Below, piece after piece: positions 13,584-21,438 of a stretch of 64,000 nucleotides of DNA. The first letter of the stretch is position 1; each line of letters starts with the position of its first letter. Source of the DNA: Mantamonas sphyraenae STR306 (lineage: Eukaryota; Protista; CRuMs); assembly GCA_026936335.1 (NCBI GenBank), contig JAPMXV010000019.1, forward strand, positions 124,001 to 188,000, in the 5' to 3' direction. The notes beneath the pieces are model-generated. The model had not been told where the DNA came from. It ran no database searches and worked only from the letters and a program-made list of their open reading frames with translations. Position numbers and translations under genes: made by a program.

Positions 13584-15049
13584 TTACTGCTGTGCACGAA
13601 GCAGCTTGCCGGCTGAAAAGCCAGCCATGAGGAGGCGAGCACCGGCAGTGTGTTGTTGTGCTGCGGTTGCAGCAGGTGTGTTGCAGGGCCACAGGTCGTC
13701 GTTGGGACATTGCGTCTTGTCAAATGCCTCCACCTTGAAGTTGATGGGCTCCAGCAATTCGTCGTAGCAACGTGGATACTCAGGGGACAGGGAGGAACGC
13801 AGGGAGCTGACGCGTCCGATGTGGTCCAAGACGTTGTACCGGAACGCCACATTGCGTCGATTGTCACCAAAGTACTCCCTGCTGGCCGGTGTCTCACGTG
13901 CATACCACTCGACCAGGATGTGATCGGGGGGACGTGCAAACTGCCTCTTCTCCAGGTAGTTGGCAATCACGTTGACGTGGTCTCGTGCGTTGCGCACAAT
14001 GATGCCCGTGAGACCAAACGATGTCCGGATGGCCGACCATTCACCGTGGTACGCCGTCGCCTTGCGCATCATGTAATTCAACGCATGCAACCCGTTGGCA
14101 CACAGCAGAAAGTCATCCTCGCTGAACAGGAAGTTCTCGGCCAACGGAGCACTCTTGCGCAGCATGTAAATCACATCCCTGATTGAATGAGAGGAGTTTG
14201 GGGTGAGGGGAGGAGGGGAGGGGAGGTGTATCGGAAGGATGATGGGCGTGAGTGGTGGGGATTGTGGCAGGTGTGTGTGTGAGTGAATCTCCCGTGTCAG
14301 GAACGCCACTCTCGCCGCCTTGGTACGGCCTTCACGCACCGTGTCTGCCTGCGCACGCGGTACCCGGGTTTGTTCTGGTTGCCCACGTCTGTGGTGGACT
14401 CTCCGGCAGGGTCTGGCACGCTGCCGTCGTTGCGGTCGAAGCGAAAGTGAGGGTTGTCGGCGTACTTGGCAGCCAGAGTGTCAAACACCGGGTGTTGCAG
14501 CTGCGGCTTGTTGTTGATGACCATCACCAGCACACGGCCGTAGAACAGGTCGCCCTTCTCCTTGGGCAGAGCCTTATCCCAGCTCTCCAGCGTCGGCGTC
14601 AGGTAGTCGATGGGTGTCCCACTGCCGTCCTTTCGGGGCACAGTTGGGATGCCCACCACCAGCCAGTAGCGAGTCGACGACGACGACGACGACGTGTCTG
14701 CACCTGTGCTTGCCGCCGGATGGGCGGCGTTGCTCTCTTTGTCCGGCACATTGCCCGCATTGGGCGGCAGGGTGGGACATGGTGTGGCCTGGGGCCTGGG
14801 AGGCGCGGCTTCGGGATGCTCGGCCGCAGCAGCCAGGAAATCCGCACGAAGGGCATCCACGTTGCGTTCGGCGGCTCTGAGTTTGTCCTGGAGCACTGCC
14901 ACCTTGCTTTGGTATGTCGTACGGATGCGTTCCAGCTCGGCCTCCTTTGTGGCCACCGTCCCGTTCACGCTCGCACTGCTCCACAGTGTGTATGCAGACA
15001 GTAACAGCAGGTAGCCTCCCACCACTAGCAATTGAGTCCGTGTCTTCAT
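13584..15049 (-). CDS. Type II membrane glycosyltransferase, GT54/MGAT4-PGAP4-like; 1 intron
   Basis: N-terminal TM helix and coiled stem, then LVVGIPTVPR...DYLTPTLES, QTR|D and an FSEDDF DxD-like motif. Confidence 0.7.
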
Positions 15050-15059
15050 GTGTCCCCTC

Positions 15060-15300
15060 CACTTTTGCAAAATAAAGTACAACCTGGCACGAACGACGAG
15101 ACAAAGAAGAGCTGCATGCCTCTGCGGGCAATGCCCCCCACATGCAATTGTATTTTGCAAATCACCTCGCGCCGCATACAGGCGCTAGTTTTCACAAGTA
15201 TTTCACCACAACAATCATCTACAACACCACTTGGACATTTTGACCCCCATGGCCTGCATCTTGTCCATCATGCATGGCCTTGCGGGCCGCCTCTTGTAGA
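15060..15300 (-). ncRNA. Candidate omegaRNA scaffold at the 3' end of the Fanzor-like ORF
   Basis: This is the position where Fanzor/TnpB omegaRNAs lie. Nested inverted repeats: TTTGCAAAATA (15064-15074)/TATTTTGCAAA (15151-15161), TGCATG/CATGCA, GGGC/GCCC and GCGCC/GGCGC. Confidence 0.3.
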
Positions 15301-18300
15301 TGCCCCCGATTGCTGCTCCAGACCCACGTGAATAGCCACAGCTCGACACCACACCGACGAGCTGCATGGCATTTGTTGGCGATGTTGATGGCAGCACTGC
15401 GGTCCTTGTGCGCCACCCACTCCTCTCCGTCTCGCAGCGTCTTGCTGGCCACGTCGTGCACATACCACCGATCGTTCCGTGACCCACTCTTGTCCACACT
15501 CCAAGCATGCTTTCGAACGGCTTTACAGTCGTACGCAGAGTGTTTGGATGTTTGGGGTTCGTGCGTCAGGGTGACTGTGGAGACACAGGCCAGTTGGGCG
15601 GCATCCGTACGCACAGGCACGCTTGCTACAACGGGCGCTGCTCCGTATCCGACATGAATTCGGTGGTTGCACTGTCGTTGGAGGTCAGCCATCACTGCTG
15701 CGCTTCCGTGTTTGATTAACCGCGCCATATGCTCTTGAATTGGCTTCAGTTCGTGCGCCAGCGTGTTCATCTCCTCGTTGATTTCCAAACGTTTTGCTGC
15801 GTTCGCAGCGTTGGAAAGCTGCTTGCCCAGCTTGCTGAGCTTGTTGGAGATCTCTGCATGACCCGATCGCCTCTGCTCGTAGCGAACATTTGTACCTTTG
15901 ATGTCGAATGTGAGTGCGTAGCTGATGCACAAAACGCCGTTCTTCTCGGACACCGTAACGCTGTCAAAGTACAAAACGAGGGCACCAATGTGCTGGTACA
16001 CGCCTGGATCATAGCCTGCACACAACCCATGAACACTGGATGCCCAGCGTGTCATCATTGTTGTGTCCGAGGACGACGACGACGACGACGATGATGCAGA
16101 CGACGACGATGATGCAGACGACGACGATGATGCTGACGACGGTGCCTCCACGTTCGCCACGCCGGTGCGCGGCCACCACGACGTCGACAGTGCAAGTTGT
16201 TTGCTCGCGGGTTTTCCTCGCATGGATTTCTCAATGTCGTCCCACGCTTCCTCCAGCTGCCCTTGCGTTTCTTTGTCCAGGTCACGTGCCTCCATTGCAT
16301 CCTTTAGCTTCTGCAAACAAGGGGGAGCATGGTCCTTGATAGTGCTCACCACACGGTCGATGAGTTGGGCCGCCTCACGATCCGCCAGCTGCGCATTCAA
16401 TGCCGTTGTGAGAATCTGGCTCCAATCGTTTCCAAATTCCCTCCACATGTTGTAGCCAATGGTGCAGAGCTTGTGAGAGCTGATTGTGTCCGTTCTGTTG
16501 TCAGCCCAGTGGACAAGGGAGTTGAAAAAGGGCACAGCTGCGTTCGTGTTGTCTCCAAGCCCAACCCGCCTTTTGCTCGTTGACGACTCGGGCAGAGTAT
16601 GCAAATCTTGGAAGCTCCACGCCTGTGGTTTGTATCGTGTCGATGCGACGCGGTCACCCTTGAAAATGAGATCATTGGCCAGTTGGGCGCGGAGGAACGG
16701 GTTTCTTCCACGGGGACCAACGGCAAGATCGCGAATCAGGTCGTGGTACACGAGCAACTCGTCCTGGCGCAATTTGTCGTCGCTCCGAAGACAGAGATTG
16801 TAGTCCACCAACGAAGCGGCATAGCACGCCAGTCGAATGTGCTCAGGAAGCTCCTGTAGCCCCGCGAGCATTTCCGCTTTCAGCTCCCAGAGCAGCTGGC
16901 GCTGCACTTTGTCGTCCGTAGCACTCATGACTGCATCCACGGCTTTTTTGAAATGTACGTACAGCAAAGAGGTTTCCTCGCGTTGAAGCAGAGCGACGTC
17001 GAGCCCACGCTGGGCAGACGCAATGGTGTGGGGGGCTGATGTTCGGCGCTGCGTTGGCAGAAATCGTCGCTGGCGGCCACCGGCCCTGCGTGCCAGCCAT
17101 GTGGCCATGGCGAAGCTGGACAGGTCGGCATGTTTGAGATTCACACCACGTGTGGCAAACACCACGTTTGCCAGCACCAGAGCCAGCAGACACAGACGTG
17201 CGCGTATCGTTTCGCGGGACGATGCATTCCCCATGATGGTGGTCTTTTCCGGCCACACCAGAGTGTCCACCGCTCTCCCTCGCTGGAGGCGCTGAAGGCC
17301 ACGGATGAAGTTTCCCCACTTGTTGGCAAATGTGATGATCTCCTGCGTCACGATTGGCCCCTTTGTCTCCTGCTCCTCCAGCCCTTCTTGCTCCTGCTCT
17401 TCCTGTTCCTCCTGCTCCTCCAGCTCTTTCTGTTCCTGCTCCTCTTGCTCCTCCAGCTCTTCTTGCTCCTGCTCTTCCTGTTCCTCCTGCTCCTCGTCAA
17501 CTGCGTCATCATCGTCCTCCATGTACTCCTCATCCTCATCCTCTTCTTCCTCGCATTGTGCGTCCACTGCAACCTCTTGCATCAACCGGCGCTTCCGTCC
17601 CTTGATCTTGATGTTTGTCAGTCTCGACAATAGGGCGTCTGCCTGTTTGTAGTTGCTTGCGAGTCCGGCTCGGATTGCGTACAGGCGGACAAACTCTCGC
17701 AACGCGAATTCGATTTTTGTCATCATCATGTCGAAATCATGCCGAAACCTCGCTGCACCCTCTGCCTCCCAAATACCGTCCACGCGTGCCCTGGGATACT
17801 CTTCTTGTCCACTTGACACGGTGTCTTTGAGCTGTAGCAGGGCATCGACGAGCTGTTCAAAGCTGGCACATCCCTGCACCGAGTTGAGCCGCGTGTCAAT
17901 GCGCTCGATGTCCTCGATCCGGCGCTGTTGATCGTCTTCATCCATCTCCTCCAGCGTTTGCACGGCCTCCAACTGCTCGTCCTTCGCCAGCACGGCAGGC
18001 AGTTCGCACTGGGTGGCCATCGCTTCCACCGCCGCGGTCCCCTTCCCCTTCCCCTCACTCTTCTCCTTCTCCTTCCCCTCCCCCTCTTCCGTCACATCTT
18101 CTTCCTTGCTTGAGGAGTTTGGAAGAATGCCGTCCAAGTGGAGAAGCAGCTCGTGCCGCTGCTTTTCGTACCCGCGTCGATCCGCCTCTTGCACTTCGGC
18201 CGCCATGCCTGCCAGCGGCTCGCTGCCGTGCTCCACCTGCCTCACCTGGCCTTTGCTTCGCGTAAACTTGACAGTCTTGTTTGTGAGGACGTCTGTGTGT

Positions 18301-20838
18301 GTCACAGTCGCGTTTGCGACACCCTTGACAATGCGTCCCAGCTTGTCGCTCAAGAAGTCCGGCCACGACTCGCTCAGCAGCGGCCGTTCTGCCTTTGGCT
18401 TCTTGGGTTTGTGCGGAACAATGCGCATCAGCTTCACTCCTGTGGGCAAGGAGAGCACCTTGCTGGCCTTCGGGGCAGACGCACGCAGCTGCTCGATCGT
18501 TGCCGAGTCGAGTTTGGTCGTCGACTGGCTGAACCTTTGCGTCAGTGCATTTGATTCCTCGAATTTGTCCAGTGCTGCCAAAAACTCGTTCCAGGTATCT
18601 TGTTCCACATACTCCGTGGCATCGGCCTCTGCCTTGGCGCTTGACACCAGGTCCTGTTCTGCTTGCACCAAACGGCGGATGACGCATGCCCACTCCTCCA
18701 GCTGAGCACCATTCAGTGCGTCCAACACGTGTTGGACACCCATTGCTTGCAAAAGTGACCCGCACTCGATGGAGTCCTGCTCGAGGAACAGATGGAGGGT
18801 ACGCCCATGAACCATCCTGCGGCGCACAAAAACGCAGGTACGGCTGACACCGACAGATGGTCGCTCTGTCGGCTGTGCTTCCACTGCTTCGTGCACCAGA
18901 GCAATCACATCCCGCACGCGTGTTCCATGCGGGAATCGGCGAAGCAGGTCGGCCATGACTCCAGCTGCCCTCGGTGGCATGGCACGCATCGCTTCCAGGA
19001 GACACTCTGTGCCCTGGATGGACACCTCGTCCTCGCCCTGGCCGTCCAGGGAGCACGGATCCAGTGTCGTGTGGGTGAGATGTTCGGTCAGACGCTCGTT
19101 GACACGGTCCAGGGCAGCCGAACTAAGCACGGAGCACATGGCTCGGACGGTCTCAGCGTGCAGCTGGTCTCTCTCTGGCTTGCGCAACCTGCTCAACCCT
19201 GCGGTTTTGGTCACAGTTTTGAGATTCAGCAGACCGCCAGCTCGCACCATGTCCACCGCCTTGTGCGTCTCGCCCACCAGCGACATCGACACATCCAGAG
19301 TCGTCGAGCCACAGAGGATTGCGCAGACAAGCCTTTCGGCATGGTCGTCTTGGATCAGTCTGATGGCATCGCCTTGTGCGTTGACCCAAATACCGGCCCG
19401 AAGCACAGTCCCATCGTTGGTTGGGCACCACAGCAAGGTTTCACCGTCACAAGCATCCCGGAGGCACCTTGACGTTGCGGCAGTATGCTCAACAACCTTC
19501 ACGCCTCTCTGCTCGCACCTCTGCTTGACTGCAGTGTGGACGTGAGACACCGAGATGTCAAACTTGTGCGCAAGTTCGGCTTCCAAAACCAGTTCCCTCC
19601 TGTTGAACTGGGCCAGAGTCGTGTCCACCGAAGCCACGGTGTTTCTCTGGAGATAGAGTGTGACCGTGTCCGGAGCCATGTTGAATCGACCTCGCAACTC
19701 ATCCAGCTCGTCGCAAAAGGAATCCACGGCCTTGTCCAGCACTGATGACGATGAGGAGGAGGAGGAGGGAAGAAGAAGAAGAGGAGGAGGAGGAAGAAGA
19801 AGAAGAAGAGGAGGAGGAGGAGGAGGAAGAAGAAGAAGAGGAGGAGGAGGAGGAGGAGCTGGATGTGCTTGAGGTGCAGAGTGGCGTTGACGACCCTGCA
19901 GGTGCCCTGTCCAGGGGGGAGCTGGGTTTCGCGGGAGCAGATGCAGCTGCCATGTGGCGTACGATCATGTCTTCCACGTGCAACACACACAATTGCATGC
20001 AATCGTGCGTTTCGCCCGCTGACACCTGAGGCTGATTTGCACAAACTGGATTCCGCTTCTTCCCGCCGAACCCGTCGCCCATTTCGCGTGTGCTCAGACT
20101 GTCCGCCATGTGGACGACGGGACGCGTGTTGGGATCCGTGCGTTGGGTCATGTTGAAACAGGAAGAGACGTAGCTGCCCGGGATAGGGTGCCTTGGAGAA
20201 ACGCATGTTTCCAACTCGAACTTGCGCTCCGTTTCAGCCGAGAGCGTCTCGGCCAGAGCCGTCAACTGGTCACCCGTGTAGAGGCCGGTTTCAGTAACCC
20301 AACCGCAGTCGCGACACAGGGCTCCGCTCTGTGCTGCGTCACAAACTGCGCGTTTCAAAGCAGACGTTGCATTTTCCGTGTTGTGCGCGACGTCGGACGC
20401 ACTGTAGGCCGCTTCCATGATGATTGGGGTGGTGGTGATGATGGTAGAGTGTCGCTTGAACATGTGCAGAGTCTTCTGGGGGACATCATACACCCCGACA
20501 CCAGCCACCAGCGACAGAAGCGCACAAACCAGCTGGAACTGCAGCGCGCCCTCTGTGTCCACCCTGTACCGGGTCAAGGTGCTAATTGCATACCGCATCA
20601 GCCTCAGAACCACACGGAAATGCTCCTCCGATGCAATGGGAACCCGACAGCGATGCGATTTGCCTGTTGTATGGCACAGGAAGTGGAAGGCGGAAGCGTG
20701 AATTTGCACTCTCGGCGGTGATTTTCCGTTTGCCCTGTACTCGTCGTGTATCCAGGCGGCGTCCATCTCAACATCCGAAAGGTTGCAATTGTACTTTTTG
20801 GACGCGTCGCGACGGTGGTCTCCACGCGTGAGGACCAT
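15219..20838 (-). CDS. Very large Fanzor/TnpB-like RuvC nuclease (~1870 aa if the 1-nt indel at ~19767-19769 is corrected; 1507-aa ORF downstream of the indel)
   Basis: C-terminal RuvC-I CAGYDPG (D at 16008-16010), then IHVGYG, RuvC-II THEPQTSK (E at 15558-15560) and RuvC-III HKDRSAAINI (D at 15402-15404). Order and spacing match Fanzor1. No introns are needed. Confidence 0.8.
17368..17555 (-). repeat. Acidic tandem repeat (EEQEEQEQEEL-type) inside the Fanzor-like ORF
   Basis: Imperfect repeats of ctcctgctcttcctgttcctcctg, translating to an E/Q-rich tract. Confidence 0.8.
19753..19858. repeat. (GAG)n/(GAA)n compound trinucleotide microsatellite encoding poly-Ser in the Fanzor-like ORF
   Basis: Directly visible; contains the out-of-phase GGG at 19767-19769. 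Confidence 0.9.
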
Positions 20839-21127
20839 ACCTGGCACAGTCGCACGTTGGTTCTGCTCGGGCTGCAAACCCGCTGCTCAATCAGACGGCG
20901 AGCTAATACACGCCGGTGCAGCAGGTGAATAGAGGGGTGTGCGGCCAAGTGCATTGGAATCAACGGGTAGCCGCAGGTTCAGGTGATGGGGACGCACTAC
21001 CAGGGGATCCCAGTCTCCACGCTGGTATTGTCTTTTCCATGCAATGGGTACGAACCCAGGCGCGAGTGTGCACGGTAGAGACGTACGTAGATGACATGGA
21101 CGATTCGTACGACACTGAGTTCATTTC

Positions 21128-21170
21128 CAGGAGGGGTTGCAGCGGGTTTCAACCGCTGCAATCCCTGCTG
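21128..21170. other. Long near-perfect hairpin upstream of the Fanzor-like ORF
   Basis: CAGGAGGGGTTGCAGCGG-GTTTCAA-CCGCTGCAATCCCTGCTG: 18-position stem with one mismatch and one G.T pair. Confidence 0.7.
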
Positions 21171-21438
21171 AGGGACTATAGATTGAGCAAGCACACCATG
21201 GAGCACCGACATGACAAGTACATGTGGCTGTTTCAATACTTTATTGCCCCTGTGCGTGTACCTGCAAAAGCGCGCTCAACTGCAACAAGCAAACAAGTGG
21301 AACCAAAGGCAGGGATTTTGTTGTGTCAAATGTCCGGTTTGAGGTCACATTCGTCACACACACACACGCACACACTGCTCTGCGGCCCACACACGAGCAC
21401 ATCACCCTTCTTCTGCTGCAACACACAATCTTGCTCGC

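Follow-up and report, generated by a model that had tools for sequence, protein, structure and literature searches.

A probable giant Fanzor1-like nuclease family in multicopy mobile elements of Mantamonas sphyraenae

The window analysed here, a stretch of 64,000 nucleotides from Mantamonas sphyraenae, a deep-branching single-celled eukaryote, contains a damaged member of a giant Fanzor family, and it is this family that constitutes the discovery. Fanzors are eukaryotic relatives of the CRISPR-Cas12 DNA cutters and have been described as compact passengers (about 500 to 800 amino acids [aa]) of transposons that have a transposase of their own. The best explanation of the locus, which we regard as probable, is that a giant Fanzor1-like OMEGA nuclease is encoded by a young, multicopy mobile element without terminal inverted repeats (TIRs). 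The element, its copies, its ends, the RuvC fold with its triad, and selection over the whole open reading frame (ORF) are directly supported, and RNA-guided homing is, by analogy, the likely function of the protein.

An earlier note on this DNA had described a 1507-aa minus-strand ORF as part of a protein of about 1870 aa. The ORF was found at positions 15219 to 19742, and an upstream frame on the same strand, running from the ATG at 20838 to a frameshift and early stop (19699 to 20838), belongs to the same gene; its translation is 96 to 97% identical to the N termini of the intact sisters. These are three sister copies (L012, L013, and L014) that are 97% identical to the window copy over 6.1 kb and that have intact frames of 1850, 1881, and 1861 aa starting at the same ATG. 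The proposed length is thus true for the family, while the window copy itself is frameshifted. An intron as the cause of the split was ruled out, because the sister frames are continuous. The giant ORF has no introns, as the earlier note had stated; the contrast that it drew with intron-containing neighbors did not hold, because genes in M. sphyraenae are mostly mono-exonic (its repeats are mostly unclassified; PMC10492846), and an intronless Fanzor gene is therefore not unusual. Pfam and PDB sequence searches with the window ORF gave nothing useful.

Comparison of the window copy with L013 revealed a single frame-changing indel, in a minus-strand poly-Ser microsatellite (19740 to 19871), with all remaining indels in frame; a net shift of +1 at GGG 19767 to 19769 (plus-strand letters) splits the window gene. 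The frameshift rests on the letters of the assembly, and the read contigs, which cover 5,991 letters, skip the poly-Ser repeat, so that an assembly error may also account for it. Changes private to the window copy comprised 9 synonymous and 19 non-synonymous differences, compared to 51 and 40, respectively, in the remaining changes that distinguish the four subfamily A copies (P = 0.03; P = 0.07 when compared to the private changes of the sisters only). This excess of non-synonymous changes leans towards real decay, and the window copy is probably a decaying member of the family. The intact sisters, not the window copy, are suited to functional work on giant Fanzors. The reading frame of another copy, L017, is also broken inside a microsatellite. 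Both frameshifts are located in low-complexity runs, and such runs at window positions 16061 to 16144, 17343 to 17555, and 19740 to 19871 mark module boundaries.

The genome searched comprised 25,061,354 bases in 78 contigs (reported as 25.06 Mb, 78 contigs, and 59% GC; PMC10492846). Eleven copies were read, which fell into subfamilies A (four copies), B (two), and C (three) and a distant subfamily D (two). A genome search with PF07282 found 39 places, 31 of which were in open frames of 1483 to 2087 aa; together with the nine A/B/C copies, these bring the number of giant loci, most of them with intact frames, to at least 40, about 30 of which were counted by profile match only. The unusual size claimed in the earlier note was therefore borne out in at least 40 loci, at two to three times the length of known Fanzor1 proteins (about 1850 aa compared to about 600 to 800 aa; PMC10711439), with an N-terminal extension of about 800 aa. 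Such a number of mostly intact loci, in elements without a recognized transposase, departs from the picture of the compact passenger. Four PF07282 loci of normal size (frames of 633 to 849 aa) were also seen (G000:C44:209417, C52:436203, C58:24124, and C6:54752). The transcriptome of M. plastica contains a cluster with a giant relative of 1836 aa, as well as relatives of 791 and 943 aa; word-index searches, which had limited sensitivity, found no giant relatives beyond M. plastica. A literature search, which missed most subscription journals, found nothing on Fanzors in Mantamonas, on giant Fanzors, or on fusions of a Fanzor with FEN.

The identification of the protein as a Fanzor is based on its C terminus. 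The three RuvC residues named in the earlier note are present at the codons described there, all on the minus strand: D1245 in the RuvC-I DPG motif (GYDPG; 16008 to 16010), the relocated RuvC-II glutamate E1395 (HEPQTSK; 15558 to 15560), and D1447 in the RuvC-III motif (HKDRSAAINI, with HKD instead of RD; 15402 to 15404). Their equivalents in L012 (D1588, E1738, and D1790) are invariant in subfamilies A to D, and because these subfamilies are only 20 to 46% identical, the motifs are not due to chance. DPG and the relocated glutamate form the published Fanzor signature, and the glutamate is in the published position, with the CxxC that follows it lost (PMC10711439). The sequence E-x-x-T-S is invariant across the paralogues, and the register of the relocated glutamate is fixed by the D paralogues, which retain the canonical E-x6-CxxC...CxxC...D arrangement. 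RuvC-I reads GYDPG in A, B, and C and DPN in D; in RuvC-III the aspartate is kept and arginine is replaced by lysine throughout the Mantamonas lineage. Constraint on the protein is strongest in the last 290 codons, with 0 to 1 amino acid changes between intact sisters.

The D paralogues match PF07282 (E = 1e-5) and NCBIfam TnpB models. The C4 zinc finger (TNB, PF07282) is kept in these paralogues and in 31 other giant frames and is lost in A/B/C, in which the cysteines are gone and PF07282 finds no match. From the sequences, we read this absence as a secondary loss, and by strict motif membership the A/B/C clade falls outside the Fanzors. A RuvC domain without the zinc finger but with an intact triad, and possibly with relaxed requirements for a target-adjacent motif (TAM), would be informative for engineering.

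When 1.84 billion proteins were searched with a profile, nine Fanzor/TnpB-like matches were returned, eight of which carry PF07282; the best three of the nine were M. plastica transcriptome proteins, and one of these three belongs to the cluster with the 1836-aa member. Language-model neighbors were Fanzor-like clusters (score, 0.94). In an unrooted tree of the Mantamonas proteins and five other matches, the Mantamonas proteins were separated from the other five (support, 95/96), with A/B/C on a long branch. An AlphaFold model of the C-terminal part had a mean pLDDT of 47.5, and the RuvC and degenerate TNB region (L012 residues ∼1578 to 1821; 15309 to 16040, minus strand) matched CasPi (Z = 10.3), Cas12f (Z = 9.7), SpuFz (Z = 9.5 over 213 residues; rmsd, 6.8), TnpB (Z = 8.8), and ApmFz2 (Z = 8.2). 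The structure search suggested in the earlier note thus pointed to the Cas12/TnpB/SpuFz group and not to an unrelated fold, although Foldseek with both models (mean pLDDT, 41.5 and 47.5) gave no match at E < 0.001. The low-confidence model of the region upstream of RuvC contained helices only, and nothing outside RuvC was matched; a WED/REC resemblance was seen by eye at the motif level.

These comparisons support a Fanzor-type RuvC fold with an intact triad at the C terminus, and the protein appears to work like, and to descend from, a Fanzor1. Fanzor1 proteins (SpuFz, 8GKH; PpFz, 9CF1; GtFz, 9CER) likewise have a RuvC domain with DPG, relocated glutamate, and third aspartate, have a Gly-containing strand (YG/FG), are eukaryotic and borne by transposable elements, and have an RNA at the 3′ end of the element, which here is a candidate only. 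The giant protein differs from them in the KD in place of RD and, in the A/B/C clade, in the missing zinc finger, and its element differs in having no associated transposase or TIRs and no evident TAM consensus. Large Cas12 proteins (Cas12a/b/i and CasPi) share the RuvC fold and growth in size from a TnpB-like ancestor, whereas the giant Fanzor has no CRISPR array, is found in a eukaryotic transposon context, and has its added part apparently in separate N-terminal domains.

Between intact A copies, dN/dS was about 0.2 to 0.33 over residues 1 to 1560 and close to zero over the last 290 codons. Judged by these substitution rates, purifying selection acts on the ∼800 extra residues at the N terminus, which indicates that the extension is functional protein. 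The earlier note had proposed that the protein accreted domains; the selected extra residues agree with this, whereas the FEN-like fold assigned to part of them is only probable and its profile test was not significant. The family would offer a naturally occurring example, in a eukaryote, of domains accreted on a TnpB scaffold.

It is fairly probable that the N-terminal half contains a fold like that of FEN1 and other 5′ nucleases. The putative domain (PIN plus H3TH; L012 residues ∼217 to 520, approximately 19214 to 20190 on the minus strand) is interrupted by the poly-Ser run and has a predicted PIN-like core at residues ∼277 to 465 and an H3TH-like motif at ∼482 to 512. A comparison of the N-half model (mean pLDDT, 41.5 overall and 66 to 83 in most blocks of residues ∼341 to 435) with 48,161 chains placed only FEN-family 5′ nucleases in the top ten (Z = 6.2 to 8.6): plastid Exo1 (8.6), Pol I (8.4), ExoIX (8.0), and T4 RNase H (7.6), followed by T5, FenA, FEN1, GEN1, XPG, and EXO1. 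It is appreciably less probable that the region is unrelated to FEN and that a poor model produced the match through a generic alpha/beta coincidence. The best Z score is near background for such searches, HMM searches and HHalign against 12 5′ nucleases (probability, 0.2; E = 0.3) did no better than decoys, and the Pfam XPG and 5′-exonuclease models matched no giant locus; searches of Pfam and atlas features also gave no match for the N-half. A coincidence would, however, have to account for a top ten drawn entirely from one family in the most confident stretch of the model, for the sole atlas row with a TM above 0.5 being a 5′-3′ exonuclease N-domain (PF02739 cluster; TM, 0.59), and for the best profile alignments falling in the expected register. 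It would also have to account for motifs, seen by eye in order in A to D, that resemble the I region and the H3TH of 5′ nucleases.

The fusion to a Fanzor and the lack of a significant sequence-level match distinguish the giant protein from the FEN1/XPG/Pol I superfamily, and the equivalents of Pol I D13, D63, E113, D115, D116, D185, and D188 are mostly non-acidic (mostly H, R, Q, T, or S, with the register uncertain). One invariant glutamate adjoins the first catalytic site in A/B/C. Because most catalytic acids are replaced, the predicted domain is more likely a binding module in this clade than a second nuclease, if the register is right. The fold search assigned none to residues 1 to 215 and 520 to 820. 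A conserved cysteine cluster (C-x2/3-C-x-W) is present at L012 residues ∼165 to 180 and equivalent positions, with more cysteines in B and C, and is a possible zinc site. A bacterial-type 5′-3′ exonuclease N-domain match (E = 3.6e-6) was also detected at G000:C34:214276-214587, in a 2252-aa frame.

The gene is part of a multicopy mobile element, a point absent from the earlier note. In subfamily A the element spans ∼6.14 kb (15147 to 21282, minus strand), as delimited by homology with L012 to L014, whose flanks differ. Homology among copies starts at the 5′ core CAGTTGAG (21282) and ends at a fixed 3′ end (15147); the 5′ non-coding part is 444 nt (20839 to 21282, minus strand). Target duplications of 4 to 20 bp were found in all 11 copies, beginning at the 3′ end and recurring to the left of the 5′ core. 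The duplication usually overlaps the last bases of the element, and at the 5′ junction variable sequence of up to 18 nt comes after it. The 3′ end is fixed, whereas the 5′ end is ragged and has filler. In the window, the duplication-like word is TTGC, which overlaps the last base of the element on the right (15144 to 15147, minus strand) and on the left (21289 to 21292, minus strand) has 6 nt of filler between it and the 5′ core. TTGC is weak alone, but over all 11 copies the duplications are significant (summed score, 81, versus a null mean of 14 and a maximum of 39 in 20,000 permutations). GTTTT or GTTG precedes the 5′ core in nine of the 11 copies. No TIRs were present in the 11 copies read, no TAM consensus before the duplications was shared over the 11 insertion sites, and no empty allele was seen in the read contigs.

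A TIR/DDE element was rejected, given the lack of TIRs and the variable length of the target site duplications (TSDs). Retrotransposition was rejected as well: copies are full length and have no poly-A tail, and the genome has one reverse transcriptase (RT) match. This only RVT_1 match is at G000:C3:7371-7718, inside a frame of 963 aa close to the end of a contig. The 3′-end motif of A/B/C occurs ten times in the genome, in the nine full-length copies and in one short remnant, a 45-nt piece near a contig end (G000:C10:8465-8509) that is possibly a severely 5′-truncated insertion.

The last ∼60 codons and the 72 nt past the stop form a candidate omegaRNA scaffold and right end (15147 to 15400, minus strand, with inferred limits), as suggested by synonymous-site conservation and hairpins. 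Identity at fourfold sites between C and A/B was 0.55 to 0.65 in the last 60 codons, compared to about 0.3 upstream. Two hairpins are conserved at the 3′ end; in subfamily B, a C-G pair of one of them, a subterminal hairpin (15169 to 15185, minus strand), has become U-A by a compensatory change. In the D paralogues a multibranch stem of 94 nt (z = −4.6 and −3.7) runs exactly to the end of the element; the 3′-end fold of A/B/C is weak (z = −2.0, +0.95, and −0.9). An Rfam search with the candidate end found no match, and in the DNA examined the only guide targets apart from each copy's own flank were 2-mismatch matches. Depth in one read run (X1), with exact matches to the window copy, rises towards the 3′ end, which is RNA-like, although the run is not recorded as RNA. 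The last ∼975 nt of A and B are 85% identical while synonymous sites upstream have reached saturation, and there is little difference between the 3′ ends of the two B copies, which argues that a module of RuvC plus end has been exchanged or converted between subfamilies; such homogenised, swapped modules fit gene conversion at the RuvC end. The switch in A/B homology is located at the poly-Ser run that immediately precedes RuvC.

The omegaRNAs of Fanzors originate at the 3′ end of the element, carry a guide of 14 to 15 nt derived from the flank, and promote the homing of the element into empty alleles (PMC13565253). By analogy, a structured RNA from the 3′ end of the giant element would run into flanking host DNA, which would supply a copy-specific guide; the ribonucleoprotein would cut the empty allele, and host repair would copy the element into the cut allele. 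More tentatively, the N-half may be an accreted nucleic-acid-binding module that includes a FEN/PIN-H3TH-like fold; in this clade the fold would probably be nuclease-dead, and the module would bind cut ends or flaps or bring them into position. The insertions resemble the products of copying into staggered breaks, in that the 3′ end is precise with short microhomology, the duplication is variable, and the 5′ end is ragged with filler. In characterised Fanzors the TAM matches the insertion site (PMC10312701), and the lack of a TAM-like consensus before the duplications counts against a simple version of homing.

How the element moves may be explained differently, and these alternatives concern mobility and are compatible with homing by a giant Fanzor. 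There is some chance, though well short of even, that it is a non-autonomous Helitron2-like element moved in trans by an HUH/Rep protein or another transposase, with the Fanzor as a passenger. CRe elements carry Fanzor1, have intact 3′ ends and variable TSDs, and insert at T-rich targets (PMC3627910); CRe-1/2/3 Helitron2 elements and Replitron-1 insertions (PMC10288648) share with the giant element a fixed 3′ end with a hairpin, variable TSDs, and extra junction bases, and in CRe, too, a Fanzor is the only gene. The subterminal 3′ hairpin and the GTTTT/GTTG words fit this alternative, as does a stretch immediately upstream of the hairpin that matches the 5′ end in inverted orientation in L017 and L018 (9 nt; P < 0.0005) and, less clearly, in L013 (7 nt; P ∼ 0.06). 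However, eight of the 11 copies have no such ATIR-like match at the corresponding place, copies are full length with almost no 5′ truncation, unlike CRe, and there are no short non-coding derivatives. In addition, the T-rich word is inside the duplication boundary and not upstream as in CRe and Replitron-1, the element encodes no RepHel, and a PF14214 search for a Rep partner found none in the genome (with an uninformative control). Folds at the 5′ end of the copies gave z scores of −0.95, −2.1, and −0.06.

Somewhat less probable again is a self-mobilising, transposase-free element, in which one ∼1850-aa polypeptide with RNA-guided RuvC and FEN-like end-handling modules would both home and make insertions, creating the break and starting the copying that host break repair finishes. 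A single ORF that fills the element and is under selection throughout, the many giant loci with mostly intact frames, junctions with microhomology and filler, and a genome with no Helitron Rep and only one RT match are all consistent with this. Self-mobilisation would, however, be without precedent and leaves the precise 3′ end unexplained, the helper screen covered Helitron Rep and RT, and two stretches of the N-half are without an assigned fold. The intact sisters could show whether a giant Fanzor spreads its own gene without a transposase, and the family is a testable system in which to ask whether Fanzors have a part in transposition and give rise to variable TSDs, a question raised previously (PMC3627910 and PMC10288648). 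It seems quite improbable that the giant protein acts, like TldR or Cas12m, as a binder or regulator of DNA that is guided by RNA and does not cut, or that it is the product of a domesticated host gene. The zinc-finger loss, the long A/B/C branch, the degenerate FEN-like domain, and the lack of a shared TAM would suit a binder, but all three RuvC acids are invariant and lie where constraint on the protein is strongest. Domestication at a single locus is ruled out by the dispersal of nearly identical copies, each with a target duplication, and a single-copy domesticated gene was rejected accordingly.

The element copies that were read appear to be intergenic. The right junctions of L013 and L017 and the left junction of L016 are at or within ∼12 nt of the stop of a neighboring ORF, and others are ∼75 to 230 nt downstream of a stop; in the window, the distance is 157 nt after a pyruvate-kinase-like gene. 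A host gene (13584 to 15048, minus strand) starts ∼100 nt after the 3′ end of the window element; its two pieces had no Pfam match, and its VGIPTV..YL..TL motif is reminiscent of the GT54/MGAT4 glycosyltransferases.
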